Shown here in pieces: positions 4,802 through 57,952 of a stretch of DNA of 64,000 nt. The translations under genes and the position numbers were made by a program. The stretch spans positions 1 through 64,000 of the forward strand of contig MCFE01000352.1 in the NCBI GenBank assembly GCA_002104905.1. Direction: 5' to 3'. Under the pieces are notes generated by a model that saw only the letters and a list, made by a program, of their open reading frames with translations, did not search any database and was not told the origin of the DNA. The stretch's first letter is position 1. Each line of letters begins with the position of its first letter. The stretch is from Basidiobolus meristosporus CBS 931.73. Its lineage: Eukaryota > Fungi > Basidiobolomycota.

Positions 4802-5879
4802 TGTAGTGGGGTCACAGTGACACCCACAGGCAGATGTGCTCATTCTTATGCATTCACTTCCCTAAAAAGGATTACCCCGCCCATATTATTATCATCCCAA
4901 ATTTGCAATATTTCCTATTTTTGTCTATGTGATTATTACTATGCAACCTGACAAACTATTTGTCCCTATTAACCCATTGCACAAGCTATTCTTATTCCTT
5001 GCCGAGATGCCAAGATAAGATAGTTACCTTATAAGGCAAGTACCCCAACAGTGCCCATGTCACGTGACCATCCTGGTTTCATAATCCCCCATCTCACTAC
5101 CATAAGAGGCAACCACATGACACAGAGGTTTCATGTTACCACTACCTGATTGGCTAGGTACTACTATGTCTCATGGAACAATCCGCCAAGAATTTGCGCT
5201 ATTTTTAGTACACAAAGACATGATTGGTTGTCTACTACCTTCTGGAAACTTCCGGAAAGTATTTTCTAGCAAGAAATTGAGCAGCAAAAAAGTATATAAG
5301 GGAGGCTATCCCTTAAAATAAATCATCCCTCTTCCAATATTCCAACTTATTGATTAGTGAGATCACCGCTACCTATTACCACTATTTTCTGACTCAGACC
5401 TGACGATACTCCCAGGAAACCGCGCTGACAGCCAACTGACCTTGGAGGCACTACTTGTGAGGAATACTCAGAGTAGGTATATTTTATTATATTGTTTGTT
5501 TTCCCAAGTTTGTTCTTGTACAGGCAAAGATACTTTTCAGTCTTTGTAACTATTGGTCAAAGCTGCATTCTTATCAAGTCCCTGTTGGTGGAGTTTACAG
5601 TTGTTTTGACTTTGGAAGCTTTAGTACATTGTCATCTCAAAGGACGTCGAAGCCATTATAAACTTTTGTTAAGACGCCAACTAAGTTGGGGATTGTAGTT
5701 CAATAGTTTTCCCTTGACAAGCTTGAGGCTTTATCCCCCATCACATTAGATTAGATAAAAGACCCAGTATTCCTAGCAAGCTTTTGCCAGAGGTTATCGC
5801 ACCCAGTGAACACCCCACACACATTCACACTTGAGAAGTGTTGGCCGTATTTTGCCCTTTGGACTTATACACCACCACA
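4802..5879 (+). repeat. Element A 5' LTR (1078 bp)
   Basis: TGTAGTGGGG...CACCACCACA. About 20 substitutions and 2 small indels versus 14533-15615 by manual comparison, mostly transitions. Confidence 0.95.
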
Positions 5880-5883
5880 TATT

Positions 5884-5901
5884 TGGCACCCAACGTGGGG
5901 G
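5884..5901 (+). promoter_or_regulatory. Primer-binding site of element A, tRNA-Lys(CUU)-like
   Basis: TGGCACCCAACGTGGGGG, 4 bp after the LTR. Close to the complement of the tRNA-Lys(CUU) 3' end ...CCCCACGTTGGGCGCCA. Confidence 0.75.
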
Positions 5902-6019
5902 GTTCATACAAGCTCCCTAGGACCCTACAAGATTTACCTGAAGATTTGAGCCGTTACCCATTTATTGAAACAAGACTACCAATATTATCAAGACTACAAC
6001 ACCAACCTACGTACCCAAA

Positions 6020-8081
6020 ATGAACTCTATGCCGTTACCACTCTCACATGGAGCCCCACAGTTTGATGGAAAGAATGTGGAGAGCTTCATATTCAAATGG
6101 GAGAAGCTCTGCAAGATGTGCAGCCTATCTGAACAAGAAATGGCTGAAGACTTCCCCTACTACTGCACTGATGATATTACTACCAAGCTTCTCAGACAAG
6201 GAGACATTCTGACTGACTGGACCTTAATGAAGACCTACCTTCAGACCGAGTATGGCAGACCCCAGATATACTATGGAATTGAGGACCTCAGACACTTTGG
6301 AAGGATGGGACTCTCCAAGCTACCACTTGAAGAGTTCATTCAACAATATGAAGATATGGCCAAGCCACTCCTAGAGTCCCAGGCAATAACTGAGTTTACC
6401 ATGACACTTTACCTTGCACAAGGGCTTCCCCAGGAGTTGGCAAGGAAAGTTGACCTACATGCAGCCAAGGATGACAAGTCTGGCATTCCTTGCTTTGCAG
6501 AGATGAAACGTGTACTTCTAGAGGCAAAGCAAACTTCTACCTTTATGAGACTCCTGACATCTAATCTGCCAGACCAGCCAACCAAGGAGCTAAAGAGTGC
6601 TGTTGCTGACAATCAGACCTACACTACCGACAGAATTGACCAACTTGCTGAACAGCTACAAAAGCTAGCCCTCAAGGTTAACGGCTCAGCTGAGGTAGCT
6701 ACTGAGGGCCAAAGAGCTTTGCCTAGACACTGCATTTGGTGTGACTCTACTCAGCATGCCAGACGTGAATGCTCAGAGCTTAGCCAGCTACTTAGAGAAG
6801 GAACAGTACAGTTTGATGCTGATGGAATGCTTGCTGATAAGGAAGGAAAAAGGATTCCCACTAATTTCCAAAGAGGCGGAATGAGAGCCCTTTTCCAGAA
6901 GTCTGACTCAGCAACTAGAAAGATTACTGTTGATGCCCCTATTGAGACTCATACAGTGAGTCCAAACAGCCCTGACAACAGAAAATACAAAGTAGACACC
7001 TTTGCTACTAAGAGACACCTTCCTGAAGAACCTGTCAAACCCATCCTTAGAAGACCATGATTTGAAGAGCCTGAGGTTATTATTGACAAGAGGCCTGGAA
7101 CACTGCCTACCCAAGACCCATTACCTCACTTTCAGATGACCTCAAAGATAGCAGGCTACTCAAGCCCCCAATTGATTACTGAGAAACTACTGAAGCAGAA
7201 CCTCACTTTGTCAGTTGGAGAAATCATGAGTGTATCACCGTCTGTTAGGAAGACCTTTGATGAGCAGCTTAGAACAAGAAGACAAGCTGTTGAACATATG
7301 GACACCCATATAATCCAGACAAACCATGAAGACCACAAAAAGGATGACACCGCTACCAAATACAAGACCTTTTACTCAGTTGCAACTGCTGTGGTGAAAG
7401 GGTATATATATGATGACCCTGTTGACTGCCATATTGACAGTGGTTCAGAGATTTGTGTTATGCCGCTAGACTTCTGGAAGACACTTAGAAGCAAGGAGCT
7501 ACTGCCTGTTGATAGAGATATTGGATGGAACATGACTGATGCAAACTCAGGGTCTAGCCCACTCTATGGTGTAGTGCACAAGTTCCCTATTGAGGTACAA
7601 GGAATCAAGGTCTGGCTTCCCCTCTTTATCTGCCAGAAGGCAAACTTTGACCTTCTGTTAGGCAGACCATGGGAGACCAGTACTAAGGCTACAACTACCA
7701 ACTATTCTGATGGGTCAGTGTGGTACACTATACAAGGATCCAACCCAGGACTACAGTCAACATTCTGTGGGGTAACACCCAACAATAAGAGGACACATAC
7801 TGCTTGCCAGAAGACACATCTTGTTATAGAAGAAGATGAGGAGCCTGACAGTATACACCCTAACAGTTGGAGCTACTCATTAGGTATACAGGAGCAGACA
7901 GCTATGGTTCGCACAAAATACAAGACAGTGGAACAGAAGATTAGACCATCACTTACGCCTTTAACTGATGGGTCTCGACCTGCTGATTACATCAGACCAC
8001 CAGAAGGAACACCAGAAGATATACGACTTACACCTGAGAGACTTAAGCAACTTATCATTGGAGATGGAAACCTAACACCGG
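6020..8081 (+). pseudogene. Element A gag + aspartic protease (N-terminal part of the polyprotein); in-frame TGA at 7058-7060
   Basis: CCHC knuckle CIWCDSTQHARREC (DUF4100-like context), protease CHIDSGSEICV and FDLLLGRPW, and TKYKTVEQKIRP. ORFs 6020-7060 and 7136-8134 share one frame. Confidence 0.9.
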
Positions 8082-8885
8082 TGTGGTGGTGTAGAGGTAC
8101 TCCTGGGAGAAGCTACACAACTCAAGGTGTGTGAGGTATCTGATGGGTGCAATAACCTCTGGGTCTAAACTGCTGGTGTCTTTGTCAGTATGTCTCTATG
8201 GTAAAAGCTCCTGCTTCTCTAGCTTCCTAGGTGCTCCAAGTGTCTCCAAAGGCCTCTGTGTGTCTTGTGCACTACCCTGAAAAGCTCCTTGATGGCAGGT
8301 CTGAGATGTACTGTTGAAGGCAGGTGCAGTGATCAACTGCTAATCAATAAGGTAGAAGTGTTACTGATAGAAGGGATGATATATTGATGAGGGATTGCTT
8401 TCCCTTAAATACTTTTCCTGATTGCCAAGTGATTACTAATGACAAGGTTCTAGAAGATTCTAGGTATCAGTGGAATTCTTGATGACATCACTATGAGCTA
8501 AAAATATGCCAAGAATGTCCTGGAAGGTTCTAAAAGGCACAGCACTCTCAACCAATCAGGAATCAGTAGTCTGAAACCTGTGCAACATAGAAATACCATA
8601 TATGGTATTGAAATGGTAGGGATGGTAACACAGACCTAGGTCATGTGTCACGGGTACTGACGCAGGTACTTGCCTTATATAGATACATCTACTGATCACA
8701 AAGCTGAATAACATCTGGGATAACTAATGTTAATAACTAATCAGGGGAAACATCATATGGGGATAATACTGATAATATGGGCAAAAGAAGAATGGGATAA
8801 TACTGATAAGATAAAATATGGATAAGTATATCATAATGACTATATGAATAAACTTGTCTGTGGGAGGTATGTTTACCCTTCCACA
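8082..8885 (-). repeat. Element B 3' LTR (804 bp)
   Basis: TG...CA ends, preceded on the minus strand by the purine tract GTGGGGGGTGGA. Six substitutions and a 1-bp indel versus the other LTR by manual comparison. Confidence 0.95.
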
Positions 8886-8963
8886 TCCACCCCCCACTTG
8901 AGCTAAAAAGTTCCCTGAAACTTTTTAGCTAACCACTGTAAGTTTGGAGAACAAAGTGCTCTC

Positions 8964-10820
8964 TCAGTCTTCCTCAATGAAGCCACCTGTCCTTTCTTGA
9001 GATAGAAGTCTACATGATGTCATTGATTGGATATTGTTTGAGTCCACACCACAGAAGGTTGCTGTTAGTCCTGGGCTCTCTGAGTATATAGTATACCATG
9101 CTGAACCATCTGGGTAGTTCACTGCAGTTGCTCTTGCTTTCACCTCCCATGGTCTTCCAAGAAGTAATTCAAAGTTAGCCTTTGCACAAATGAATACTGG
9201 GATCTCATGGGGTATTCCTTCAATGATGAGAGGGAAGTTGCGAATAATTCCTAAAAGCTTTGATTGCCCTGAGTTGGCATCCTTCATGCTCCAATTGATA
9301 TTGGTGTCTATGGGCAATAGGTCTTTGCATGGTAGTTGTTTCCAAGCCTCCAAAGGCATCACACATATCTCAGATCCACTGTCTATATGACATAGGACTT
9401 CTTGATTATGCACAGTTCCTGTAGTTGTTGCAGTTGCCACTGAGTAGTAGTGTTTCTGGCTTTGATGCAACTTACTGATATCTTGGCTTCCTTGAACTGT
9501 CCTGACCTGGTTGCCTTGAGTTGCTTCAATTGGATGATTTCTTATTCTGATATGCTCATCCAGAGTCTTTCTTACAGATGGTGATACACTGAGTAGCTCT
9601 CCAACCTTGATTGATATGTTGCTTCCTAGTATATGACTTGTCAGTGCCTCTGGGGTAGCATTTTGCTTGACTCTAGGCTGCATGTGGTAGTTGTTGGCCT
9701 TGGCAGACTCTTGTAAAATTAATGGGGGTGATGCTTTCTTCTCAATCACAACTTCTGGCTCACATCTTGGTACTTTTGTTGCTGGGCCTGGATTAGCCAT
9801 TTTTTCAGGATGGTGTCTCTTTGAAGCATAAATTGATGCTATATGATCCTGGGCCTCTCTGGGGTCCTCATAGTCAAAGTTCAGAACTTCAGCTGGATCA
9901 AAGTAGCCAGGATCTTCTTCTTCATGGAGGTGAACCTTTCTTGTTTGAGAGGTGACTTGCTTGTAGTGAACTCTCATTCCTCCTTGTCCAAATGCTGTGG
10001 ATAATTTGTCACCATGCTTACTGACTATGTATCCCTGAGGACTATATAGGACATCACCTGTGGATAGTAATGACTGAAGCTCTTGGCAATTTCTCTTGGA
10101 ATGGTTGGCAGAGTCACACCACATGCATGTATATTTGACTTCTTTCTCTACTGGCTTCTGACCATATGCTTTGCTGGCAAGTAGCAAAGAGAGTTTCTCT
10201 AGTTGCTGTGTCAGCTCCTGAATTTGGGTGCTTTGATTGCTGGGAGTAAGTATGTCTTGGCTATCTTGGTTTTGTTCTGGGCTTGAAAGAAGCTTTCTGA
10301 TTGGTGAGGTTTCTTCAGGGGCAAGTAGAATCTGTTTAGCTAACTGAAATGCAGGCAGTGAACTCATAGCTTTCACCGTAGGATTGTTTTCAGTCCTTCT
10401 CACCAGGCCTTCTGGTAGTGCTCTGAGCAGATAGGCAGATAAAGTCAGATCAGTGATAATGCCTTGGGCTTTCAGTGACTCCCCAATTTGCTCAAGGCCA
10501 CTCAAGTATTGTTTCAATGGTAGCAGCTTAAACTTGCTATAAGCAAAGTTCTCCAAGTCTTGAAGTGTATAGTCAACTTGTCTCTCTCCATATTCATCAA
10601 TCAAGTAGCTCTTCAAGAGGGTCCAATTTGTCAGCAGATCATTTCTTTCATATAATGAGAGCATGATCTCATCAGTGCTGTAGGGGGGCATCTCTTCAGC
10701 CATAATGGCCTCAGGTATTTTGTGGGCTCTGCAGAAAAGCTCCCACCTCTTGATGAAAGCTTTAACTTTGGTTCCATCAAAGAAAGGGGTTCCTTGCATT
10801 CCTGGTAAAGGTAGATCCAT
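8964..10820 (-). CDS. Element B Gag-protease polyprotein (618 aa, intact)
   Basis: Open ORF. N-terminus FDGTKVKAFIKRWE aligns with A's FDGKNVESFIFKWE. CCHC CMWCDSANHSKRNC; protease CHIDSGSEICV and FELLLGRPW. Stop lies ~65 bp before the PPT. Confidence 0.92.
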   Translation of the reverse strand: MDLPLPGMQGTPFFDGTKVKAFIKRWELFCRAHKIPEAIMAEEMPPYSTDEIMLSLYERNDLLTNWTLLKSYLIDEYGERQVDYTLQDLENFAYSKFKLLPLKQYLSGLEQIGESLKAQGIITDLTLSAYLLRALPEGLVRRTENNPTVKAMSSLPAFQLAKQILLAPEETSPIRKLLSSPEQNQDSQDILTPSNQSTQIQELTQQLEKLSLLLASKAYGQKPVEKEVKYTCMWCDSANHSKRNCQELQSLLSTGDVLYSPQGYIVSKHGDKLSTAFGQGGMRVHYKQVTSQTRKVHLHEEEDPGYFDPAEVLNFDYEDPREAQDHIASIYASKRHHPEKMANPGPATKVPRCEPEVVIEKKASPPLILQESAKANNYHMQPRVKQNATPEALTSHILGSNISIKVGELLSVSPSVRKTLDEHIRIRNHPIEATQGNQVRTVQGSQDISKLHQSQKHYYSVATATTTGTVHNQEVLCHIDSGSEICVMPLEAWKQLPCKDLLPIDTNINWSMKDANSGQSKLLGIIRNFPLIIEGIPHEIPVFICAKANFELLLGRPWEVKARATAVNYPDGSAWYTIYSESPGLTATFCGVDSNNIQSMTSCRLLSQERTGGFIEED

Positions 10821-10872
10821 GGTCTTGATAATTTGTTCTTTCTTAAGTCTTCTAGGGGCAGTTCAGTCAAAC

Positions 10873-10890
10873 CCCCCACATTGGGTGCCA
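10873..10890 (-). promoter_or_regulatory. Primer-binding site of element B, tRNA-Lys-like
   Basis: Minus strand TGGCACCCAATGTGGGGG; identical to A's PBS except for one CpG>TpG change. Confidence 0.75.
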
Positions 10891-10894
10891 AATA

Positions 10895-11697
10895 TGTGGT
10901 GGTGTAGAGGTACTCCTGGGAGAAGCTACACAACTCAAGGTGTGTGAGGTGTCTGATGGGTGCAATAACCTCTGGGTCTAATCTGCTGGTGTCTTTGTCA
11001 GTATGTCTCTATGGTAAAAGCTCCTGCTTCTCTAGCTTCCTAGGTGCTCCAAGTGTCTCCAAAGGCCTCTGTGTGTCTTGTGCACTACCCTGAAAGCTCC
11101 TTGATGGCAGGTCTGAGATGTACTGTTGAAGGCAGGTGCAGTGATCAACTGCTAATCAATAAGGTAGAAGTGTTACTGATAGAAGGGATGATTTATTGAT
11201 GAGGGATTGCTTTCCCTTAAATACTTTTCCTGATTGCCAAGTGATTACTAATGACAAGGTTCTAGAAGATTCTAGGTATCAGTGGAATTCTTGATGACAT
11301 CACTATGAGCTAAAAATATGCCAAGAATGTCCTGGAAGGTTCTAAAAGGCACAGCACTCTCAACCAATCAGGAATCAGTAGTCTGAAACCTGTGCAACAT
11401 AGAAATACCATATATGGTATTGAAATGGTAGGGATGGTAACACAGACCTAGGTCATGTGTCACGGGTACTGATGCGGGTACTTGCCTTATATAGATACAT
11501 CCACTGATCACAAAGCTGAATAACATCTGGGATAACTAATGTTAATAACTAATCAGGGGAAACATCATATGGGGATAATACTGATAATATGGGCAAAAGA
11601 AGAATGGGATAATACTGATAAGATAAAATATGGATAAGTATATCATAATGACTATATGAATAAACTTGTCTGTGGGAGGTATGTTTACCCTTCCACA
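10895..11697 (-). repeat. Element B 5' LTR (803 bp)
   Basis: Near-identical to 8082-8885 and followed on the minus strand by TATT + PBS. Confidence 0.95.
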
Positions 11698-11700
11698 CCG

Positions 11701-14493
11701 GAGGAGATCTTACTATTTGAAGAAACCCTGAAAAGGCATGATAAGGCTCTCTCTTATAACGACAAGGAGATGGGACTCTTAAAGACATCGGTTGAAAAAC
11801 CTATCAAAATTCATACAGTGCCCCACACACCCTGGTCATTTAAACCTTACCCACTGCCTAGAGGACTCCAAGCTGATGTGCATGACCTACTTAAGAAGAA
11901 GATTGAAGCTGGTATCCTAGAACCTTGCCATGGACCTTATGCTAACAGATGGTTTGTGACCAAAAAGAAGAATGGGAAGCTCCGATTCATTCAGGACATG
12001 CAACCTGCAAATGCTGTCACTATCAGAGACGCCGCAATACCTCCGTCTATTGATGACTTTGCAGAAAGCTTTAGTGGTCACTCCATCTACTCAACATATG
12101 ATCTCTACTCAGGATACGACCAGATTCCCCTAGATGAGACATCAAGAGATATGTTTGCACTCCAGACACCATTTGGACTGTTAAGAATGACAAGACTTAG
12201 CCAAGGGGCAACAAACTCCGTGGCTCAGTTCCAGAGGTGCATGGTAAATGTGCTCTACCTGTTTATACCTGAGAAACTTGCTGTCTTTGTTGATGACATA
12301 GGCATCAAAGGACCAAAACTCCGGGACACAACTGAAGTTATGCCTGGAGTAAGAGAGTTTGTCTATGACCATATTTCAGACAATGATGCCATATTAGGAG
12401 CCATTGAAGAAGCTGGACTCACCATCAGTGGTGAGAAAAGCAGCTTTGGTGTATCAGAGATATCCATTGTTGGACAAAAATGCAACACCTTTGGTCGTTC
12501 ACCCGGAGTCTCCAAGACACAAAAGATATGCAACTGGCCTACCCCCACAAATCTAACACAAGCTCGTGGCTTTGTGGCAGCTTGTGGGTTCTTTAGGATC
12601 TGGATCCCAAGATTTTCTGAGATAGCAGAACCAATCTACCGACTACAGAGAAAGAATGCCCCATTTAACTGGGGAGAAGAGCAAGAAGAAGCCATGCAAT
12701 TACTAAAAGAGGCCTTAGTATCTCCACCAGTTCTGAGACCTCTTGACTATCAGAACACTGAATGCCCACCTATCTTGACGGTGGATGCAAGCCCTGTAGG
12801 AGCTGGAGCACTACTTGGCCAAGATGATGAAGATGGTAACCGCTATGCCTGCAGATATGAGAGCTGCCTCTTCTCTCCTAGAGAACAAAGATACTCACAG
12901 ATTAAGAGAGAGCTACTAGGAGTTGTGAAGATGCTGAGAAAGCTGAAGTCACAACTCTACATGACACATTTCATCCTGGAGACAGATGCTAAGCCACTTA
13001 TAGGAATGATTAACAAGCCTGATCTACCTGATGATACCACAAATTGGTGGATGGCATGGCTGAAAATGTTTGACTTTGAGGTCAGACATATCCCTGGCAA
13101 GACAAATGTTGTGGCTGATGCACTCTCCAGGAAGGGACCACAGTTGTCTGAAGATATGGACCCTGACTTTGATGACATAATTGATGCAGAAATCCGACAA
13201 CTACACGTGAAGAAGCCCAGCAACTCTACGTGGAACACCATTCAAGACTATCTGAGAACCTTAGAGAAGCCACCAGGAATGAGCCCACATGATTTCAGAA
13301 AGCTCAGGAAGAAGGCCCATCATTTCTACATAAAAGATGGCCTCCTCTTCAAACAAGTAAAGCCTGGACAGACACCAAGAAGAGTTATAGTTGAGCCCCA
13401 GGAACAACTGACTATTATGTCAAGCCTTCATGAAGGAAGACCCGGTGGTCATAGAGGCAGAGATGCCACTTACAATGTTGTTTCCAGTAGATACTACTGG
13501 GAGCATATGTATCATGATGTCCAACACTTTGTTGAATCTTGTGACATTTGCCAAAGAAGGTCAACCAAGAGATATGAGGAGCTGCTCCATCCCACCTACA
13601 CACCTTGTCTATGGCAGAAGGTTGGCATTGACCTGGTCCACATGCCAACTGCTGGAACCAAGAAGTACCTTGTTGTTGCCAGAGATGATCTGAGTGGGTG
13701 GGTAGAAGCTCGAGCCCTACCCAATAACAAAAGCCACACCATATGGAGATTTATTCTTGAAGATATAATATGCAGATTTGGCTGCATCAGCCAGTTTGTT
13801 GCTGACCGAGGAGAAATGACCTCAAATTTGATCCAGGAACTCTGCTCACAATACAAGATTCATATTGCTTTCACTACCGCTTATCACCCACAGGCCAATG
13901 GAATGGTTGAAAGAGGCCATGGCCCGTTAGTTAACTCCCTGGTCAAGAGCTGCAACAACATGACACTACAGTGGCCTACACAACTTCATCTAGCACTCTG
14001 GGCAGATAGAATCACTACAAAGCGCAGCACAGGTCTATCTCCATTCAAATTGCTTTATGGACATGATTGCGTTCTTCCCATAGAGCTTGACTCAATATCC
14101 TGGAACATGCTAGAGTGGAGAACTACAATGAGTACAGATGAACTACTGACTACACACATCAAACAGCTTGATCACCATGAACTTGATATTACCCAAGCAG
14201 CTGCTAAACTCAAAGAGACAAGACTTCAGAACAAGGAACCATTTGACAAGTCACATAGCCTTAGACCAAAGCCATTACTGCAAGGAGATCCAGTACTGCT
14301 CTATGATTCCACTTTAGACAAGCAGTGGAGTCGCAAATTTGACAATAAGTGGTCTGGCCCATATATTGTCTCTATGGTGATTGGAAATGGAAGCTACTAC
14401 CTGTCTGAACTTGATGGAACACCGCTAAGAGCACCTGTGGCAGGAAACCGACTTAAGCTATTCAAGCACCGGAATTTTGCACATTACATTTAG
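11701..14493 (+). pseudogene. Element A pol (RT, RNase H, integrase), reading frame still open but separated from gag-PR by element B
   Basis: RT YDLYSGYDQ..FVDDIGIKG; RH TVDASPVG..RELLGV..ETDAKPL; IN H..GGHRG..CDIC, GIDLV, VADRGE, GMVERGH. No chromodomain after the integrase. PPT GAGAGGGGGGTGGA at 14519-14532. Confidence 0.95.
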
Positions 14494-14532
14494 TTTGCTT
14501 TGACCTGAGTTCAAAGCTGAGAGGGGGGTGGA

Positions 14533-15615
14533 TGTAGTGGGGTCACAGTGACACCCACAGGCAGATGTGCTCATTCTTATGCGTTCACTTCCCTAAAAAG
14601 GATTACCCCGCCTATATTATTATCATCCCAAATTTGCAATATTTCCTATTTTTGTCTATGTGATTATTACTATGCAACCTGACAAACTATTTGTCACTAT
14701 TAACCCATTGCACAAGCTATTCTTATTCCTTGCCAAGATGCCAAGATAAGATAGTTACCTTATAAGGCAAGTACCCCAACAGTGCCCATGTCACGTGACC
14801 ATCTTGGTTTCATAACCCCCCATCTCACTACCATAAGAGGCAACCACATGACACAGAGGTTTCATATTACCACTACCTGAATGGCTAGGTGCCACTATGT
14901 CTCATGGAACAATCCGCCAAGAATTTGCGCTATTTTTAGTACACAAAGACATGATTGGTTGTCTACTACCTTTTGGAAACTTCCGGAAAGTATTTTCTAG
15001 CAAGAATTTGAGCAGCAAAAAAAAAAGTATATAAGGGAGGCTATCCCTTAAAATAAATCATCCCTCTTCCAATATTCCGACTTATTGATTAGTGAGATCA
15101 CCGCTACCTATTACTACTATTTTCTGACTCAGACCTGACAACACTCTCAGGAAACCGCGCTGACAGCCAACTGACCTTAGAGGCACTACTTGTGAGGAAT
15201 ACTCAGAGTAGGTATATTTTATTATATTTGTTTGTTTTCCCAAGTTTGTTCTTGTACAGGCAAAGATACTTTTCAGTCTTTGTAACTATTGGTCAAAGCT
15301 GCATTCTTATCAAGTCCCTGTTGGTGGAGTTTACAGTTGTTTTGACTTTGGAAGCTTTAGTACATTGTCATCTCAAAGGACATCAAAGCCATTATAAACT
15401 TTTGTTAAGACGCCAACTAAGTTGGGGATTGTAGTTCAATAGTTTTCCCTTGACAAGCTTGAGGCTTTATCCCCCATCACATTAGATTAGACAAAAGACC
15501 CAGTATTCCTAGCAAGCTTTTGCCAGAGGTTATCGCACCCAGTGAACACCCCACACACATTCACACTTGAGAAGTGTTGGCCGTATTTTGCCCTTTGGAC
15601 TTATACACCACCACA
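14533..15615 (+). repeat. Element A 3' LTR (1083 bp)
   Basis: Direct repeat of 4802-5879. Confidence 0.95.
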
Positions 15616-18600
15616 ACGGCCAATATCTTGCCTTACAAGTCATAATTGACTATCCATCAGTTACTACTGTACTAACATTATCTTGCTGGCCAGTTGATAC
15701 TTTTATATTGGCACCAGGCTGTTGTTGTCACCTTGCGCAAACTGAGTCAGGTAAGTTTGTGACATCTTTAGGCTTACCTCAGCCTTATGGATATGGCATG
15801 CAGAGTGCTAGCTCTGACAAAGAAGGCTCACTGATAGATTGTGAGCCTATCCCCCCTAACAACAGTACCGCACATTAGCCCGGTCAAATTACAATATGCA
15901 ATACTATAATACCCATTGAAGCAGTTGCCAAGAATTCTTTATGGAGCCAAGTGAGCCCAGTAATTTGTCTACTGGTGAATGATGTAATGTTGTGCCTAGA
16001 GAAGCAACAGGTTTCTGCTAATATCAGTAATGGGGGCTTGGAGGATTTATTACTACTACTTGCCAAAATTATTCTGGGACGCAACTTAACATGTACATGG
16101 TACATGTGGACAACTGTCATGTGGCTGGCAACTCATGGCCTGGGGACTGTCCTTATTGCAGCATGTTTTTACAGTTGCATGGCTTTCACATCCAAAAATG
16201 CCACCTTTGCAACATGTCCAAATTGTCAGGAATCCACTACCACTGAGGGAAAACATTGTTCACACTGCAGATATATTTTGGTAATAACCTGTCTAAAGAA
16301 GCTCATGCAGCTCAACAGATATAGCAAAGCTATACAGTACCACACCCGGTTTCAATCAAGTGCAAACATATCCACTATATTTGATGGCAAACACTACAAA
16401 CCACTACCAAGCAAGGGCTACTTTGAAGGTATGTATGATCATGCCTTTGCCTTAGCACTTGATGGATTCTAATTAAACAAGTACTCTACCAGCAAATTCT
16501 GCTGGCCACTAATTCTCACTAACCTAAATCTGCCGCCTGTCTTACAGGATCAAAGCAAAAGTTTAGTGGTAGTCTCACTGGTATCTGGGCCTATATCACC
16601 ATCAAACCTGGATAGCTACCTGTATCCATTACTGAATTAATTGGTATGCCTTGCAGCAGGGCAATAGTAAATGACGTCATGCCATAGAGCGCATTATTAC
16701 TTGCATTGGAGATACCCCAGCCATCAGCTACATAGCTGGCTTTTTGAGCACAATGGATGGTATTGCTGTCAAATGTGTGAGATCCAGGGGATTTACTCCA
16801 TTACTCACATATATTAATGTTACCCAAACACCAACACTAAGAACATCATCTTCCCACACAGAGAATGTACAGAATTCAGCATGCAATTGCAACAAAGTTG
16901 CCAAGCTATAAGCCATTGGCCACAATATGGAATCAATTAGAAATCATAGACACTGAAGATAGATGGTATCTGTTAGAGCACAAGATTTCCACTGGGAGCA
17001 ATGTATTTGCTTTTCAACAATATCCCTATATAGATGACCAAGCTGTACATGGGGCATTTCAAGCTAAATGAGCCCTTTGAGATACCAGAGACATTTGAAA
17101 GAATTGGCAAGATATTACAGAGAATGCACTACCCTAAGTACTTCCCATGGGTTCCAAGCAATTTTCATATGCATATGCAACAATACAACTGCAAAGACTG
17201 GATGAACTGGATATGTATATGTTCACATGGCATTTTGAAGCCACTCCTATTAAGAGTGTATTGGAAGCATTGGGAGTCATATGTGACATTGTAGGAATAT
17301 TTATCCAGAAGCAGATCACCACTGCCAACTTGACATAAGTACAGCTGTTGTGCAAAGAGTTTATAACAGGATTTTAGAGGCTATACTACAAACATAGAGC
17401 TGAGCACATAGATCTCTGCCACTGCTATATCCATTCTGTACTCCATCTTGTTTGGTGTGTGGAGAAAATTAGCCATTGCTTCACCCTTTGAGAGTTTACC
17501 ATTGAACCAATGTTTGGGGAGGTAGGAAGTCAAGTCAGGTTGCTTGTAATACCATATCCCAACATCATCAAGAATATTATCTTAAGTCTGTGATGGAAGT
17601 GATGAGTTGGCCCATGAATGGCAGCCTGGAAGAGTTGGAAAATGCTGAGGACAGATGCACACATGAAGACACCTATGCCTAGGGCATTAAGAAGCTGAGC
17701 TGCCCCAATGCTTGGGTAATCAGTTAAATAATGCAAATTTGGGTTGGGTGCAACAAGCAACTAATTCTTATTTGGAAAACTCTACCAAGGTATGCCAGAT
17801 TTCTCATGGTCACAAGCCAACTGCTACACTATTCAATTTGGAATTCAACAAACAAGAGCCAGAGCATGCCTATAAGGGGGACTAAAATCCAGCAGGGAGA
17901 AGGAATCTATTAGCTAAATCCCAAAAAGCTCATTGCAGATATTCAGAAGATATTCATGGTAGATGTGGCGGTAACTAAGCATATCTTACAAGATGTATAT
18001 GTTACCAGCAATACAGGATATATGGCAACTTTGCAAGTATCACACTAAAAAGCCATAAAGTGAGTTGATAAAAGTATGTCAATTGTAGCAGGTGTGCATG
18101 TTTGTAGAGGTTAGTAAGCAGGAGGCAATAGTTTTTTTTTGATTTAAACTATATGTGAAATACTCAAGGTAGTAGTGGGTAAGCAAATAAAGAGGGGCAA
18201 TTCTACAGTGGAATATATGAATTGCACAAGGGGAGGCAGCAAAAACAAATACCATTTGGTAAATTAGTACAGTAGTATTATACAGAAGTAGTTGTGGGTC
18301 AATATACAGCTGTGATAATGCCATTGGAGACTTGCTGTGAGGCTGTCAAAATACTGTCAAGTTTTTTGCCATGTAAGGCAATTGGATATACTGGCTGGTT
18401 TGATCCATTTAAAGTAGTTGTAGAGCATGTCAGGACTGCAACAATGCCATGCAACTATTGTCACAACACCAATCAAACCCTGTCAAGTTTTATAACTTTA
18501 TTTGTCAGTAGAATTAGCAAAACACCGTTGTGATCCCATCACAAAATTGTCAAGAGGGTCACTGATTACAAGCTGCTGATATTAGGATGGTTTCTAAACA

Positions 18601-18659
18601 GGATTCTGACAGCTCTTCTGGATTGGATCCACCAGTGGGACCAAAATATTTTGCATAGG
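15616..18659 (+). mobile_element. CMC/CACTA-like element copy 1: degenerate transposase and right end; left arm missing
   Basis: Collinear with 24880-27500. Contains FDGKHYK..AFALALDGF. Ends TTTTGCATAGG, a degenerate right TIR. Confidence 0.85.
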
Positions 18660-19656
18660 TGGAAGAATACACACCAAAAGCAACTGTGTTCAGATTGTGC
18701 CATCACCATTCAATATGGAATTTTCACAAATACAAGCCAGAGTGAACTTACAATGGGGACTAAGTTCTTTGCAGATATTCAGGAGACATTTATGGGAAAA
18801 GTGGGGCTACCAAGGATAAGTTTGCAAGATGTATGTCACCAGCAATACAAGGTATAAAGCAACTTTGCAAGTATCACATTAAAAGGACATACAACTGAGG
18901 TGATAGAAGTGTGGTAATTGCAGCAGGTGTGCATGAATGTAGAGGTTAGTAGGCAGGAGGCCATAGTTTATTTTGATAGGAACTATACTTGGACTACCCA
19001 TGGTAGTCATGGGTTAGCAATTAAAGAGAGAAATGATTCTTCAGTGATGCTTAATATAGAGGGTACCTCTGAAGCAAAAGCTTTCCACTGTAGGCAATGC
19101 ATTTGCTCTTCAATAATATCCCTATACTAAAAACCAAGTTGTAAATGGGGCATTTGAAGCTTAGCAAGTCCTTTGCAGCACCAGAGAAACTTGAAAAAAT
19201 TGGCCAGATACCTTGGAGTATGTGCTACCCAAAGAATATTTCAGCAGCCCCAATCAACATTCATATAAATATGTGCAGATACAAGTGGTGGTGCACTCCT
19301 GAGAAGTTGTACACCTTGTAGTGGCGGCACTTTTCAACTTGAATACAGATTTTATGAAAACCAGATAAACTTAATATGGAGGGAATATGTTTGTGTAAAA
19401 GCTTATTGCTGGGAGAGATGCAAATACTCTGGAACAATACACAGTACAGATGGTCATGTTCTACATGGGGCATTGCAAGCTAAATGAGTTCCTGGAAATA
19501 CAGGGTAAATGTGAAAGATTTGGCCTCATACAACAGAGTATCTGATACCTAAAATACTTCTTGCAAGCTCTAATGAATAACCATACTTATATGCATGAAA
19601 GAAAGTGCAAAGATTTCACAAATGGGATATATATTTATTCAAGTGGCCTTCCCAAA
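18660..19656 (+). pseudogene. Mosaic of older CMC transposase fragments; the last one continues at 32692
   Basis: Segments resemble 27080-27480, 26230-26460 and 26290-26500. Ends at YSSGLPK. Confidence 0.7.
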
Positions 19657-20929
19657 CCCTATGAAAAGCAGCTTAATCCTGCAGGGGGATCCAATCTGAA
19701 TTAACTATCAAGATTCTGTCAGGAGGCCAGTATAATACCAGCAGCTTGGAATTATTGACCATCTACATGACCTTATAATGGGATCACAATGGCATTTTGC
19801 TAATTTTACAGCCAAACAAAGTTGAAAAATATAACAATGTTTGTACTGTGTTTTGCCAAGGGTGGAATGGCATTGTTGGGGTCTCAGTGTGTGTTACAAC
19901 TTTTTGAGTGGATCTAACTGGCCAGTACATCCAATTGTTTTATATAGCAAGAAACTTGACAGTGTTTTGATGGCCTCTTTGCAAGCCTCTGATGGCATTA
20001 TCATGGCAGCATGTTGGCCTATAGCTACCTCTGTATAATGCTACCATACCAATTTACCAATTGGTATTTCCTTTTTCTACTTCCCCTTGCGCAATTCATA
20101 TATTCCACTGTAGAATTACCCTTCTTTGTTTGCATACCAACTCCTACCTTGGGTATTTCACATATAGTTTGAATCAAAAAATACTACGGTCTCCTGCATA
20201 CTAACCTCTACTAAGGTGCACACCTGCTGCAATGACATACCTCTGTGACTTCAGCTATATGGCTTTTCAGTGTGATGCTTTCAAAGTTGATATATACCTT
20301 GCATTGCTGGTAACATATGCATCTTGCAAAATATGCTTGGTTACTGCCACTTCTGCCCTTAATACCTCCAGAAAATCCGCAAAGAACTTTTTGGTATTTA
20401 GCCAACAGATTCCTTCTAACTGCTGGATTCTAGTCCCTCTGATAGGTGCATACCAGCTCTTGTTTGTGTGAATTCTGAATTGAATGGTGCAGATACTGGC
20501 TTGTGACCATGAGAAATCCAGCATACTCTGGTAGAGTTTTCCTAATAAAAGTTAGTACAACTCCCAAAAGGTGAAGTAAGGTCCAATATTCACAACATGC
20601 CAAGCAAGATGGAGTAGCAAATGGACAGAGTAGTGGCCAAGATCTGCTTGTTCAGCTTTATGCTTGTAGTATAGTTGCTAAAATTCCGCCACAAACTCTT
20701 TGCACAAAAGCTGTAGATGCATCCAGTTGGCTTAATGATCCACTTTGGGATAAATATTTCTACAGTGTTTACATACAACTCCTATTGCTTCCATTGTACT
20801 CTTGGTCAAAATGGATTCAGAAGACCACTTGAATAATTACATATCCAGTTCATCCAATCCTTGCACTGGTATTGTCACCTATGCATATGAGTGTTACTTG
20901 GAGCCTGTGGGAAGTACTTAGGTTAGCAG

Positions 20930-21733
20930 TGTGGTGGTATAGAGGTACTCCTGGGAGAAGCTACACAACTCAAGGTGTGTGAGGTGTCTGATGGGTGCAA
21001 TAACCTTTGGGTCTAAACTGCTGGTGTCTTTGTCAATATGTCATTATGGTAAAAGCCCCTGCTTCTCTAGCTCCCTAGGTGCTCCAAGTGTTGCCAAAGG
21101 CCTATGTGTTTCTTGTGCACTACCCTGAAAAGCTCCTTGATGGCAGGTCTGAGATGTACTGTTGAAGGCAGGTGCAGTGATCAACTGCTAATCAATAAGG
21201 GAGAAGTGTTACTGATAGAAGGGATGATTCATTGACTAGGGATTGACTTCCCTGAAATACTTTTCCTGATTGCCAAGTGATTACTAATGACAAGGTTCTA
21301 GAGAATTCCAGCCACCAGTGGAGTTCTTGATGACATCATTATGAGCTAAAAATATGCCAAGAGTGTCCTGGAATGTTCTACAAGGCACAGCACATCCAAC
21401 CAATCAGGGATCAGTAGTCTGAAACATGTGCAACATAGAGATACCATATATGGTGTTTAAGTGGTAGGGATGGTAACACAGCCTTAGGTCATGTGCCACA
21501 GGTACTTACATGGGTACTTGCCCAATTTAGATACATATAAAGAGCACAAAGCTGAATAACTTCTGGGATAACTAATGCTAATAACTAATCTGGGTAAACA
21601 TCATATGTGGATAATACTAATAATATGGGCAAAAGAAGATTGGGATAATACTGATAAGATGAAATATGGATAAGTACAGCATCATAGCTATATGAATAAA
21701 CCTCTCTGTTGGAGGTATGCTTACCCTTCAACA
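20930..21733 (-). repeat. Solo LTR of the element-B family (804 bp), older copy
   Basis: Same length and ends as the B LTRs but visibly more diverged. Interrupts the outer element's transposase. Flanks are GCAG / GTGA. Confidence 0.92.
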
Positions 21734-22199
21734 GTGAATACTATGTAATATCTTGCCAATTCTTTTAAATTTCTCTGATATCTCAAAGGGCTCATCTAGC
21801 TTGAAATATCCCATGTACAACTTAGTCATCAGTATGGGGATATTGTCAAAAAGCAAATGAATTACTCCCAGTGGAAAGCTTTTGCTCCAACAAATACTGT
21901 CTATTGTAAGTATCTCTGGTTTCCAGTTAATTGCATATTCTGGCCAATGGCTTATAGCTTGCTAGCCTTGCTGCAATGCATGCTGATTTCTGTATGTTCT
22001 CTCTGTGGGAAGATGATGCTTTTAGTGTGGGTACTTGGGTAATAATAGTGTGTGTGAATTATGGAGTAAGTCCCTTGGATCTCACATATCCATCACTACT
22101 ATTGTCTTTTGTGCCCAGAAAAGCAAAAAGCTTTACAATATTTGTTGGCTACCCCTATGAAAAATTATTAAGATGATCCCATCAAAAGTTAATGACCCA

Positions 22200-24538
22200 T
22201 GACTGAGAGGTACTGATCTTGTCAGGACACCGTCCAGAGACTGTTGAAAAATAATTGCACCCCAGATTTCACAAAAAACTTTGTCAAATTTTTCATCACA
22301 ACAATGTATAAGTGGCTTTTGATTGGATCCCTGCCAATTTGCTCACTTTCTGATCCCAGACACTCAATCACCTCCTACGTTTGTGTGAATAGATTGGCTA
22401 TTGCCTCTTTTTCACACTCCTTACTTCCTGACTCAACCATTTCTCTTACTTTTTGTGCGTACAAATTGATTTATTTCCGTAGAAACTTCAGTAGTACCTC
22501 AATTGCCAATTGTATTGACCTATACAAGTCTCTATACCCTACACTAACATTAAGACCAACACCATACTCAACAAGCAACTCCATTAAAATCCACCACTCA
22601 ATAAGTATTTCTGCTGTAACACTCTGGTTCCACAACTTTGGCAGGAACACAACGGCTTTATGCCACTGTTCATTCACTAGTTCCCACACATCCTGGTCTT
22701 CAGCTGCACTGCAAGGTTGAGCTCCTCATTTGCCAGTCTTTGCAATAAATCCTTGCAAAATTCCAGTGAGCTTTGTTGAGCACTGCTCTTGAAGAAGTGC
22801 TGCAACCTCTTGGTGTGCCTATTAATGTTCCAAAACTCCACTGAAGGCATTGTGATAGTCTTTTGAGCTCTTGATGTTGTAGCCTTGTCTGTCAGTGGGA
22901 TCTACACTCTGTCAACAATGGAGGCTGTGGAGGCTGTGGTAGACAAATTGCCTTTTTCAACAAACTCATCTACCTTGCTGGAGTGTAGCTCAACTGGCTG
23001 CACTTCCAACTCTTGTGAAAACAGCTGTTTTCTTGTTGGTAATTCTTCTTGGCTATCATGGGATTCAGTCTGTTCCTGGCTTGCGGCGTTAATTGGCAAG
23101 AACTGCAGTTTTTCTGCATGCCTCCCTGTCTCAGGCTTGGGTTGACATTTTTCCCTTCACCTTTTCCTTTATCACTGCCAGGTCTTTCACTGCTACCTTG
23201 TCTGAGTGCTTCTTGTAAAGAACTATGTTTCCTCCCGGATAAATTCTGCTCTGACGCATCTGTTTTGGCCTGCTTGTCCCTTGCTGGCACTCTTCTGGCA
23301 ACCTGACGCTACTTTTCAGCTTGTTTTGAGCTCTCAACTGTAGTTGTGACAGGCTCCTGTAAAAGCGGCTGGTTTTTATCACTGCCAGGTGCTTCACTAC
23401 TACTTTGGCTGGGTGCTTCTTGAGTGGTACTACACTTTTTCCTTGATAAATGTTGTGCTGGTGCATCAATGTCTGCCTGCTTGTCCTTAATTGGCACTCT
23501 TCCAGCTGCCTGACGTCTCTTTGACGCTTGTCTGGAGCTTTTAGCCCTGCTTGTAATAGGCTCTTGAAGAAGCCACTGGTTTTTAGCCATGGCACCCTTG
23601 TTCTTCTGCCTTTGATAGTTTCTGCTATTCTTAAGATACTTTCTTAGCATAACAATGCTGGCCCAAAATCCACTTGCCTGTTTAAATCCAGGATAATGCT
23701 CATGGAACAAGTCAAGTGCATTCTGCTTGGCCTTGAGTTCCTGATGGTCCCATGGTATGCCAGCCTTAAGGTGATGGCATGCTAGACTTCTGATGGCCTC
23801 TTGTATATTAGCCCACTCTTCATTATTGCACTCAATGGCTTCACGGATCTTCAAGGTCTTTTGATTTTTAGGCTTTGGTATAAACAACACATTGTCTCCC
23901 TCCCATGCTATGATAGGTTTTGCTGTGGGCTTTATCTTTGGGCACTGTTGTTGTGCTTCAAAGACTGTACAGTGTTCCTCTGCTGTCACATTGGGATATG
24001 GCTCAATTCTTGGCTCTGACATTGAGCTACTTGAGTTCCTTCTTTGCAGCAAAGATACTGCTTTCTCTACCTGGGATATTGATAGCTCTACACGTATTAT
24101 CCGCTCATCCTGTTTCTGGACTACTTCCTGATTTCTCAGGGCTATTGCATCTATCCTATGAGCCACTGCACCTAATTGCTTCATTGATGCTTTGGTATGA
24201 GCTGACAACAAACTTGATAATATGGGTGGCGGTGATGTTATCATGGCCACTTGCTGATCTTCAACAGAGGGTATTGGGTTTGCTACATTCTCATCTGCCT
24301 GAGCATAATGGTCAGCTTGTGGCTCCGCAGAGGTTCTCAAGTGCCTACTTGACTGAGAGCCTGAGGAGTCTGCATTATTACCTTCAATGGGCACACTGTC
24401 CACAGGGCCTTTTTTGGATGTAGCCTTGTTTGTTGCACTGAATGTCAAAGCAAGCTGTTGTCCAACCATTCTTCTGTTGCTGTGAGTGGTGGGGTTTGGT
24501 TGAGAACCAGACAATTTTGCTTTATTTTCTGGCGGCAT
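22200..24538 (-). pseudogene. Second (accessory) gene of the CMC element, function unknown; first ~410 codons open
   Basis: ATG at 24538 (MPPENKAKL). Conserved block WANIQEAIRSL..IPWDHQ..FWASIVMLRKYLKNSRNYQRQK is also present in the copy at 30295-32640. Has a 207-bp tandem duplication and stops/frameshift downstream. The 3' end is approximate. Confidence 0.75.
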
Positions 24539-24762
24539 ATATATATGCAAGTGAGTCAAACCAAAGGGGAAATAGTGTTACATATATGTGTGTATGTGGT
24601 GCCACAACTTTATTTATAATGCTTACTATGGCAGGTCATCATTGAATCTTACATTCATGTAAGTGCAATGTCTCAAATACATGACTGTCTTAAGTTCAAA
24701 TGAGTATTGACCAAAAAGTGACATAATAGCATTACGTTGTTGAAGGTCAAACTGTTTGCCCC

Positions 24763-27450
24763 ATGGACAAGACTACTTTGACTCAACACCATAAGAGAAG
24801 AGAAAAAAGACTATGTGGCTATTGTGGCAAGCCTCTCAGCCATGAAGCACGCAGAGAGCATAGGAAGCATTACAAGGATCATGGCCAGTGTTTTGCCACA
24901 CAAGTCATATTTGACCATTAATTGGTCACTACTGTACTAACATTACCTTGCCAGCCAGTTGATACTTTTATATTGGCACCTGGCCGTCTTTGTCACCTTG
25001 TGCAAACTGAGTCTGGTGAGTTTGTGATGCCTTTAGGCTCACCTCAGCCTTCTGAATATGGCATGCAGAGTGATAGCTTTGATGAGGAAGGTTCACTGAT
25101 GGATTTTGAGCCTATCTCTCCTAACAACAGTACCACATATGAGCCCGGTCAAATCCCTATATGCAATGAGACAACACCCATTGAAACAAATGCTAAGGAT
25201 ACTTTATGGGTCCAAGTGAGCCCAGTAATCCATCTACTGGTGAATGATGTAATGTTGTGGCTAGAGAAGCGGCATGTTTCCACTAATATCAGTAATGGGG
25301 GCTTTGAGGATTTATTACTACTTCTTGCCAAAATCAAACCAGGCTGCAACTTACCATGTACATGGTACAAGTGGACAACCATCATGCAGCTGGCAACATA
25401 TGATCCAGAGACTGACCTGATTCCAGCATGTGTTAACAGTTGCATGGCATTCACATCCAAAAATGCTACCATTGCACTGTGTCCAAATTGTCAGGAATCT
25501 GCCACCATTGAGAGAAAACATTGCTCACACTCCAGATATATTCCAGTCATACCCTGTCTGAGGAAGCTGATGCAGTCCAACAAATATTGCAAAGCTATAC
25601 AGTACCGCACTCAGTATCAATCAAGCGCAAACATATCCAATATATTGGATGGCAAACATTACAAACAGCTAAGAAGCAAAGGCTACATTGAAGGTATGTA
25701 TGACCATGCCTTTGCTTTAGCACTTGATGGATTCTCATTAAACAAGTACTCTACCAGCAAATCCTGCTGGCCACTGATTCTAATCAATCTGAATCTGCCG
25801 CCCATCTTATGGTATCAGAGCAATAATCTGACGGTAGTGTCACTGGTATCTGGGCCTAAATCACCATCCAACCTGGATAGCTACCTGTATCCATTGCTGA
25901 ATGAATTTTGTATGCTTTCCAGCAGGATAATAGTAAATGGCCGTCATGTAAAAGCGCATATTACTATCTGCATTGGAGATACCCCAGCCATCAGCAAGAG
26001 AGCAGGTTTTTCCAGGCACAATGGATGGTATTGCTGTCAAATGTGTGAGATCCAGGGGATTTACTCCATAACTTACACACATTATTATTACCCAAGCACC
26101 AGCACTAAGAGCAGCATCTTTCCACAGAGAGAACATACAGAAGTAAGCATGCAATTGCAGCAAAGTTGGCAAGCTATAAGCCATTGGCCAGAATATGGAA
26201 TCAATCGGAAACCAGAGATACTTAAGATAGAGGGTATCTGTTGGAGCAAAAGCTTTCCACTGGGAGCAATGCATTTGCTTTTCAACAATATCCCTATACT
26301 GATGACCAAGTTGTACATGGGGCATTTCAAGCTAAATGAGCCCTTTGAGATACCGGAGAAATTTGAAAAAATTGGCAAGATATTACAGAGTATCCACTAT
26401 CCTAAGTACTTCTCATGGGATCCAATTAATATTCATACCCTTATGCAACAATACAAATGCAAAGACTGGATGAACTGGATATATATTTATTCAAGTGGTA
26501 TTCTGAAGCCATTCCTACCAAGAGTACATTGGAAGCATTGGGAGTCATATGTGGACATTGTAGGAGTATTTATCCAGAAGTGGATCACCAATGCCAACTT
26601 GACGCATCTACAGCTGTTGTGTGAGGAGTTTGTGACAGGATTTGAGCGGCTGTACTACAAGCATAAAGCTGAACATGTAGATCTCTGCCGCTACTGTATT
26701 CATTCTCTACTCCATCTTGCACAGTGTGTGGAGAATATTGGGCCTTGCTTCACCTTTTGGGAGTTTCCTATGGAGCAGATGTGTTGGGAGATAGGAAGAC
26801 AAGTAAAGTTGCAGGTACTACCAAATCCCAATCTCATCAAGAATATAACCCTCAAGTCTGTCATGGATGTGATGAGTTGGCACATGGAGGACAGCTAGAA
26901 AGAGTTGGAAAATACTGAGAACAAATGTGCACATGGAGACACCTATGCCTATGGCATTAAGAAGCTAAGCAGCCCCAATGCATGGGTAATCAGTTAAGTA
27001 ATGCAAAGTTGGGTTGGGTGCAACAAGCAACTAATTTTTATCAGGAAAACTCCACCTAAATATGCTGGATTTCTTGTGGTCACAAGCCAACTTCTACACC
27101 ATTCAATATGGAATTCACACAAACAAAAGCTAAAGCTCACCTATAAGGGGACTAGAACCCAGCAGGAAGAAGGAATATATTGGCTAAATACCAAGAAGTT
27201 CTTTGCCAATATTTAGGAGGTATTATGGCAGAAGTGGCAACAACCAAGCATATGTTTGCAAGATGTATATGCTACCAGCAGTACAAGGTATATGGCAACT
27301 TTGCAAGTATCACACTAAAAAGCCGTAAAGTTGAGGTGATAGAAGTATGTCAATTGCGGCAGGTGTGCGCATTTGTAGAGGTTAGTAAGCAGGAGGCCAT
27401 AGTTTTTTTTGATTCAAACTATATGTGGAATACCCAAGGTAGTAGTGGGT
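24763..27450 (+). pseudogene. CACTA/EnSpm-type (Tnp2/Transposase_21 + DUF4218-like) transposase; 658 codons still open
   Basis: ATG at 24763 with CGYCGKPLSHEARREHRKH; TAA at 24919. Then LALDGF, WPLILINLNLPP, GPKSPSNLDSYLYPL, GDTPAISK..GF..HNG..CCQMC, IHSLLHL..IGP..FWEFPMEQMC. TAG at 26896. The 3' end is approximate. Confidence 0.9.
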
Positions 27451-27506
27451 AAGCAAATAAAGAAAGGTGATTCTACAGTGGAATATATGAATTGCACAAG
27501 GGGAGG

Positions 27507-28632: not shown

Positions 28633-28938
28633 GAGGTAGAAAAAGGAAATACCATTTGGTAAATTGGTACAGTAGCATTATACAGAACCAGTGGCTGGCT
28701 GTCATACTGCCAAGAAAAAGCCATCAGAGTCTTGCTGTGAGGCCGTCAAAATACCGTCAAGTTTCTTGCCATATATGGCAATTGGAAGTCCTGGCCAACT
28801 GGATCCACTTAAAATAGTAATAGAGTGCTGAAAGACTGCAACAATGCCATGCAAATATTGTCACAGCACCAATCAAAAATTGTCAAGCTTTATCCCTTTA
28901 TTTGGCTGTAAAATTTGCAAAACACCGTCATGATCTTG

Positions 28939-30080: not shown

Positions 30081-30294
30081 GGGACAAACAGTTTGACACT
30101 CAGCAATGTAATGCCATTACATCACTCTTTGATCAATATGTTTACAACAGTCTAGTATTTGAGATATTGCACCTACATGAGTGTAAGATTCAATGATGAC
30201 CTGCCATAATAAGTATCAGTAATAAAGTTGTGGCACCACATACACATTTATATGTAACACCCTTTGCCCTTTGGTTTGACTCACTTGCATATAT

Positions 30295-32640: not shown

Positions 32641-32691
32641 TAGAATTGGCAATGGCCTTTTGACAGGATCATCACAATGATTTTCATAGGG

Positions 32692-57615: not shown

Positions 57616-57952
57616 AGATAAAACACCCGGATATCTCGACCCAACCCTACCCCACCCCCAGTTCAGAAAGCAGCAGCAATAAAGGCCCAACATTCACATT
57701 CGGTGGCTTAGTTGTCTAGTGTGAAGTTCAAGAACATCACCGGTTTATTTCGTATTTTATCCCAACACAACAATCGTTGGTAAAGAAAGAGAAAGGATCA
57801 GGTATAAATCGGACTTTTAAGGGTCGAACGAGATCATCAATATTCTGGGTAAGCTAGATGGTTGGAAATTTCTATTCGCGATATCCACTCGAGTGTATGT
57901 AGCGTTGCTTTGGGTGACGAAAAAAATCCTATACCTTTCGGTTACGGCGCGC

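Follow-up and report, generated by a model that had tools for sequence, protein, structure and literature searches.

A Gag-protease LTR retrotransposon lacking pol, nested in an older Ty3/gypsy-type element of the early-diverging fungus Basidiobolus meristosporus

The window analyzed here is a 64,000-nucleotide stretch of the genome of Basidiobolus meristosporus CBS 931.73 (GenBank assembly GCA_002104905.1, contig MCFE01000352.1, positions 1 to 64,000 of the forward strand), a member of an early-diverging fungal lineage, in agreement with a first-pass annotation, made from the sequence alone, which had supposed a fungal host. The window harbors a compact long terminal repeat (LTR) retrotransposon, referred to as B, which encodes Gag and a protease in one intact open reading frame (ORF), has no reverse transcriptase (RT), RNase H or integrase, and is integrated, with a target-site duplication, into an older Ty3/gypsy-type element, referred to as A, from which it diverged anciently. 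The features of the two elements and of a related solitary LTR are listed below, with amino acid (aa) positions counted in the B protein and with the terminal regions of the LTRs denoted U3 (unique 3' region) and U5 (unique 5' region).

8082..11697, minus strand: element B, a complete pol-less LTR retrotransposon of 3,616 bp, with an LTR pair, a target-site duplication, a primer-binding site (PBS), a polypurine tract (PPT) and one ORF
10895..11697, minus strand: 5' LTR of B, 803 bp, carrying a TATA-like GTATTTAAGGG and AATAAA; its U5 end is TACACCACCACA
10872..10894, minus strand: TATT spacer and PBS of B, TGGCACCCAATGTGGGGGG, one base different from that of A (5880-5902); none of 100 shuffles matched by chance
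8964..10820, minus strand: ORF of B, 618 aa plus stop, comprising Gag (capsid-like aa 1-175, CCHC aa 232-245), a disordered linker, a DUF4100 segment (aa 371-428) and a retropepsin (aa ~460-600)
10086..10127, minus strand: CCHC zinc knuckle of B, CMWCDSANHSKRNC, of the form CX2CX4HX4C (aa 232-245); C232, C235, H240 and C245 are nearly invariant in homologues
9021..9443, minus strand: predicted retropepsin domain of B (Foldseek), with the catalytic DSG at 9375-9383 and LLGRPW downstream; D480, G482 and G524 are nearly invariant
8901..8931, minus strand: perfect 13-bp hairpin (fold computation) in the 78-nt 3' untranslated stretch of B, directly upstream of the PPT
8886..8895, minus strand: PPT of B, GGGGGGTGGA, adjoining the 3' LTR and identical to that of A (14523-14532)
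8082..8885, minus strand: 3' LTR of B, 804 bp
8078..8081 (left copy) and 11698-11701 (right copy), no strand assigned: target-site duplication CCGG of B, on whose removal the frame of A is restored
4802..15615, plus strand: element A, the older Ty3/gypsy-type element interrupted by B, with LTRs at 4802-5879 and 14533-15615, gag-protease at 6020-8081 and RT-RNase H-integrase at 11698-14493
20930..21733, minus strand: solo B-type LTR, 90.9% identical to the B LTR, inside a repeated tnp2-type DNA element, with an empty site in two paralogous copies

In the orientation of B (minus strand), the TATT spacer comes next to the 5' LTR and then the PBS, TGGCACCCAATGTGGGG. The LTRs start with TGTGG and end with CCACA. 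By repeat scan and alignment of all three copies (the third at 20930-21733), the members of the pair are six substitutions and one single-base indel apart, a divergence of 0.75%. If the terminal A is counted as flanking sequence, the target duplication can also be read as ACCGG. The near-identical LTRs and the CCGG on both sides bear out the young age given to B in the first-pass annotation, and the LTRs, PBS and PPT of an element that it had described as compact and complete in cis were all located, with exact coordinates. Ty3/gypsy LTR retrotransposons are characterized by direct LTRs with TG...CA ends, a target duplication of 4-6 bp, a PBS beside the 5' LTR and a PPT beside the 3' LTR, all of which are found in B.

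The coding capacity of B was examined by motifs and by structure comparison, with residue conservation judged on 30-44 distant homologues. Pfam detected the DUF4100 segment (E 2e-5), and because its Asp_protease match lay below threshold (E=0.045), the protease identity was taken from structure comparison; the sequence contains DSGS (aa 480) and LLGRPW (aa 553). The AlphaFold model of the ORF, which used the distant homologues as its alignment, has a predicted local distance difference test score (pLDDT) above 90 over aa 1-170, 230-290 and 460-600 and is disordered between these regions. Foldseek matched the C-terminal domain with Ddi1 retroviral-protease-like domains and HIV-1 protease (E 7e-8, TM-score ~0.75 on the target), and this domain is firmly predicted to be a retropepsin. 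When aa 1-300 were modeled separately (pLDDT 84.5), the sole specific matches were the capsids of dArc1, PNMA2, Arc and Ty3, with weak E values of 0.03-3; a Ty3/Arc-like capsid fold of the N-terminal region is thus weakly but consistently supported by the model. B accordingly presents the Gag capsid fold, through a match that is weak but specific, the CCHC knuckle and the retropepsin D-S/T-G motif of Ty3/gypsy elements.

No RT, RNase H or integrase was detected inside B by tblastn with the corresponding region of A, and there is no room for pol since just 78 nt separate the stop codon from the 3' LTR. An intact 618-aa Gag-CCHC-protease ORF without the three pol domains, as first annotated, is therefore what motifs, structure matches and tblastn recover. 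The pol order RT - RNase H - integrase is missing from B and is present in its relative A, which places the lineage. LARD and TRIM elements have no internal coding capacity, and the intact ORF sets B apart from them. The hairpin between stop codon and PPT, with its 13-bp stem and 4-nt loop, could be a relic of a deletion junction or a cis signal; the z-score of the whole tail is merely -1.9. Conservation of a hairpin upstream of the PPT in both elements was considered and rejected, as A has a weak 7-bp stem that is no better than shuffles.

The domains of element A succeed one another as RVT_1, RNase H, integrase zinc-finger and rve, as in Ty3/gypsy elements. Its LTRs are ~97.4% identical, with transitions accounting for 18 of the 21 substitutions (six at CpG), and from this divergence A is judged to be the older insertion. 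B sits antisense within the protease-RT linker of A. The gag, protease and pol of A share one frame, interrupted by a single in-frame TGA (7058-7060), between gag and protease, and by the insertion of B; removing B together with one CCGG copy restores the reading frame (...NLTP joined to EEILLF...). At the position of the TGA, B has an arginine codon, AGA. The Smittium relatives keep a single continuous gag-pol ORF, and for this reason the TGA of A is more likely a nonsense mutation than a site of programmed readthrough. B had been proposed to disable a helper copy here; it does interrupt A, but this carries little weight, since A also has the TGA and nesting is usual in transposon islands. 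No target-site duplication was found at the ends of A. From 15618 on, the sequence is the start of another repeated element, one tnp2-type copy of which begins 2 nt past the 3' LTR of A, and this abutting copy may explain why no target duplication of A can be recognized.

The B protein shares 33% identity with the gag and 47% with the protease region of A, or 38% over 622 residues across the stop position of A. Its end coincides with '..IEED' in A, ~25 residues ahead of the start of the A RT. For the codon alignment and the relative-rate tests described below, the gag and protease pieces of A were joined with X (NNN) at the in-frame stop. The codon alignment gave a proportion of synonymous differences (pS) of 0.72, which is saturated, and a nonsynonymous divergence (dN) of 0.62; with synonymous sites saturated, the dN/dS ratio of A versus B is uninformative. 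From the 38% amino acid identity and the saturated synonymous sites, B is judged not to be a deletion derivative of A and both lineages are judged to be old, in line with the initial view that B is no simple deletion of A.

The LTRs of B and A align at just 53% identity, with conserved islands comprising a TATA-like GTAT(A/T)TAAGGG, AATAAATCATCCC, CCTGATTGG, a 19-nt block within U5 (CCAGAGGTTATYGCACCCA) and the final 12 bases of U5. Counted by eye with the sequences side by side, ~37 of 38 positions agree from the U5 end through the spacer and the PBS, and the PPT with the first three LTR bases is identical (13/13). The U3 ends differ, being TGTGGAAGGG in B and TGTAGTGGGG in A. Conservation had been described as concentrated in the elements that Pol must recognize. 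The U5-PBS and PPT islands are indeed the strongest, but the TATA-like, AATAAA and ATTGG islands and the 19-nt block are conserved alongside these ends. The shared U5-PBS and PPT signals would fit trans-mobilization by an A-like Pol, and common ancestry with a shared tRNA primer would fit them equally well. The 19-nt block, located in U5 of A (5790-5810) and of the B LTRs (11000-10980, in B sense), repeats the PBS core GCACCCA and may serve in packaging or as a second site of tRNA contact.

The history of the B lineage can be traced beyond this insertion. The solo LTR is a true old integration: its flanks adjoin each other in two paralogous tnp2-type repeat copies (near 26397 and near 17129), and a degenerate AGTG-like duplication can still be recognized. 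B-type LTRs were thus active at two well-separated times in the window. In relative-rate tests with ten Harpellales outgroups, the difference in change between the B and A Gag-protease was not significant in seven, and the other three were split, two for B and one for A. By this comparison, the Gag-protease of B is as well conserved as that of the autonomous-type A and is not a decaying relic, an outcome that fits either continued selection on Gag-protease or a recent loss of pol.

B contains six CpG in 3,616 nt (observed/expected 0.04), and AGA or AGG is used for 23 of its 24 arginine codons. The depletion is found in both LTRs and therefore predates the insertion, and the ORF stayed open while the B lineage underwent this long loss of CpG. 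The genic half of the window has an observed/expected ratio of 0.80, compared with 0.21-0.23 in A and 0.08-0.12 in other transposon DNA. The transposon part of the window (1-36000) is nearly CpG-free compared with the genic part (36000-64000) and has an excess of TpG and CpA. The loss in transposon DNA looks like the product of long-term, transposon-targeted cytosine methylation and deamination. This contrast between transposon DNA nearly devoid of CpG and genes that are not may be of more general use than B itself.

Within the window there are one B, one B-type solo LTR and one A, and no further coding remnant of either element. An exact look-up of the B protein in protein collections returned no record, and a word-indexed protein search gave no match at E<=0.001. 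Exact look-ups of two neighboring ORFs in the transposon island were likewise unsuccessful. A full HMMER scan of 1.84 billion cluster representatives with the B protein found none above 29% identity; the best matches, at 25-29%, were all from Harpellales or metagenomes. The search with the A Pol protein had a best match of 47% identity and none from Basidiobolus. Metagenome scans with the B protein and with the shared U5-PBS DNA motif yielded no relatives. Since the best B matches are merely 25-29% identical, the transposon proteins of this genome are missing from the protein collections; evidently, its transposon ORFs were not called as genes, though the genome is included.

The nearest database relatives are DUF4100-type Ty3/gypsy elements of Harpellales, from Smittium culicis (OMJ17852.1) and Furculomyces boomerangus (PVU87237.1), sharing 25-29% identity with the B Gag-protease and 47% with the A Pol. 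They have the same Gag-CCHC-DUF4100-protease layout, in one ORF with pol. Unlike B, they are of autonomous type (RT and RNase H present, some proteins being RT-fused) and very distant, and none is pol-less as far as their short contigs show.

On balance, B is probably a non-autonomous copy of a Ty3/gypsy-type LTR retrotransposon (Metaviridae-like, DUF4100 lineage), deleted from an autonomous relative of its own lineage and most likely mobilized by Pol in trans. The deletion would have occurred inside an element of the B lineage, not in A, removing all sequence between the protease-RT linker and a point close to the integrase terminus and leaving the LTRs, PBS, PPT and the complete Gag-protease ORF. 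RNA transcribed from the LTR would then be translated into a Gag-protease polyprotein, and would most likely be packaged, copied into DNA starting at the shared tRNA primer site, and inserted into the genome by RT, RNase H and integrase acting in trans. Pol would have to come from an autonomous element that primes at the same tRNA site, cleaves at the same PPT and recognizes the TACACCACCACA U5 end. An A-type element is one candidate source; the more natural one would be an unseen element of B type that carries pol. A deletion that spares the whole Gag-protease ORF and leaves 78 nt with the PPT has the typical look of replicating dependent elements, although this argument is made after the fact.

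Several points weigh against this preferred reading. B is known from one internal copy within the 64-kb window, and the solo LTR attests a persistent LTR lineage while saying nothing on the pol content of the older element. At an LTR divergence of 0.75%, an open ORF is expected even without selection and is no sign of it. No primer tRNA for the B PBS was found by a tRNA search of the window and of two other loci. Pol could also have been lost during the very reverse transcription that made this copy, or by a later genomic deletion, in which case B never transposed in its pol-less form. This last point leads to a possible, though less probable, explanation, that B is a one-off defective copy: an autonomous B-type element lost RT, RNase H and integrase through template switching in reverse transcription or through deletion after integration, and founded no family. 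Internal deletions are common among LTR elements, a single B is present in the window, its young age makes the intact ORF uninformative, and a relative-rate test without relaxed constraint fits a very recent loss of pol. Such an accident has to account for a random deletion of ~3 kb with one end a few codons past the protease and the other 78 nt short of the LTR, an unlikely combination that spares both the complete ORF and the PPT, again judged after the fact.

The first-pass annotation had favored a long-lived satellite lineage, in which B produces its own capsid and processes it to maturity, relies specifically on A-family Pol and keeps its cis signals matched to A over long evolutionary time. 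The near-identity of the U5 end, spacer, PBS, PPT and LTR start despite saturated synonymous sites, the activity of B-type LTRs at two separate times and the conservation of Gag-protease to the same degree as in A all speak for it. We nevertheless regard it as unlikely. The same conservation is expected between related autonomous families with a common tRNA primer, the U3 ends differ, and the promoter-like islands are conserved too, so the conservation is not specific to Pol. The solo LTR at 20930 had been taken to show that the family persisted; this holds for the LTR lineage, given its 90.9% identity and the empty paralogous sites, but not for the pol-less state of the older element, on which the solo LTR is silent. 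The satellite scenario moreover rests on a single B copy, and both the TGA and the insertion of B have broken this copy of A. A fuller version, in which a stable Gag-protease satellite lineage of an early-diverging fungus has long replicated on the Pol of an anciently diverged A-type family with its signals matched, its fusion protein possibly interfering with helper particles, is similarly doubtful. A role of the B ORF mainly as an anti-element protein appears far less probable still: as a stop-free Gag-protease fusion with a 1:1 ratio of protease to Gag, it would co-assemble with and poison related particles, like Gag-derived restriction factors. B does have a sense codon where A has the in-frame TGA between gag and protease, and Gag-derived interference is established for other retroelements. 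The Smittium relatives, however, also have a single gag-pol ORF, so the continuous ORF is probably ancestral and the TGA of A a mutation.

Read as a dependent element, B has parallels in plants. TR-GAG elements of Coffea canephora are shorter than 4 kb and contain LTRs, a PBS, a PPT and a Gag ORF but no aspartic protease, RT, RNase H or integrase, and their definition asks for at least two copies (PMC4350172). B resembles them as a short LTR element (3,616 bp) with PBS, PPT, a single Gag ORF with a zinc knuckle and no RT, RNase H or integrase, and TR-GAG elements are presumed to be mobilized in trans (PMC4350172). In contrast to the TR-GAG definition, B has a complete retropepsin domain and is known from one copy in the 64-kb window; furthermore, TR-GAG1 is Copia-related and from a plant, while B is of Ty3/gypsy type and from an early-diverging fungus. 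Closer in content are the 28 GAG/PROT-only non-autonomous LTR families reported in sugar beet, many of them Ty3-gypsy related, which keep GAG and PROT and have lost RT, RNase H and integrase (PMC13570524). As an LTR element keeping just these two domains, B falls within this type. The sugar beet families differ from it in being multi-copy, in their plant host and in having domains described as remnants, compared with the single observed copy and fully open ORF of the fungal element. The comparison with a protease-bearing TR-GAG in a fungus, made in the first-pass annotation, thus holds for the protease and the host, but the type itself had already been reported (PMC13570524).

Trans transposition has been directly observed in ddm1 Arabidopsis for AT5TE33540, an ATCOPIA63 TR-GAG (PMC8704663). 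Like B, it is an LTR element that encodes Gag but has no pol, and a related autonomous element is its candidate helper; unlike B, this TR-GAG is of Copia type, has no protease and is highly similar to its helper candidate (PMC8704663), compared with the 38% identity of the A and B proteins. BARE-2 and BARE-1 of barley likewise form a pair of dependent and autonomous LTR elements with common cis signals, but BARE-2 is without Gag and keeps pol, the opposite deficiency to that of B (described in PMC4350172). In a survey of fungal LTR elements, many had an incomplete pol (PMC3248453). A literature search turned up no fungal GAG/protease-only or TR-GAG example. B therefore belongs, in a new host group, to a known kind of dependent element and is not a new kind.

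For now, B is a lone, well-preserved representative of an already known category. If it belongs to a true pol-less family, "semi-autonomous" LTR retrotransposons that keep Gag, with or without protease, would reach from plants to early-diverging fungi, and B with a compatible autonomous element would be a clean pair for separating the proteins that a dependent retroelement has to supply itself from those that it can obtain from another element.

Other features of the window concern its surroundings. The ORF at 60932-61888 encodes a mitochondrial phosphate carrier, with 91% identity to Basidiobolus ranarum proteins and 87% to a B. meristosporus CBS 931.73 protein. A second locus of the same assembly, MCFE01000422.1:37112-58065, compared with window positions 50932-64000, carries an 87%-identical phosphate carrier beside a similar C2/HELP/WD40 gene, suggesting that the genome contains large duplicated segments. 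A Transposase_21 (tnp2) DNA element is present in several copies, 75-89% identical and including inverted ones, at 15618-20900, 24883-29600, 30044-32691 and 22153-24800, with an ORF at 24922-26898. Two tandem 207-bp units, ~71% identical, lie at 23168-23581 inside an ORF-rich repeat, and further copies are found at 31248-31665.

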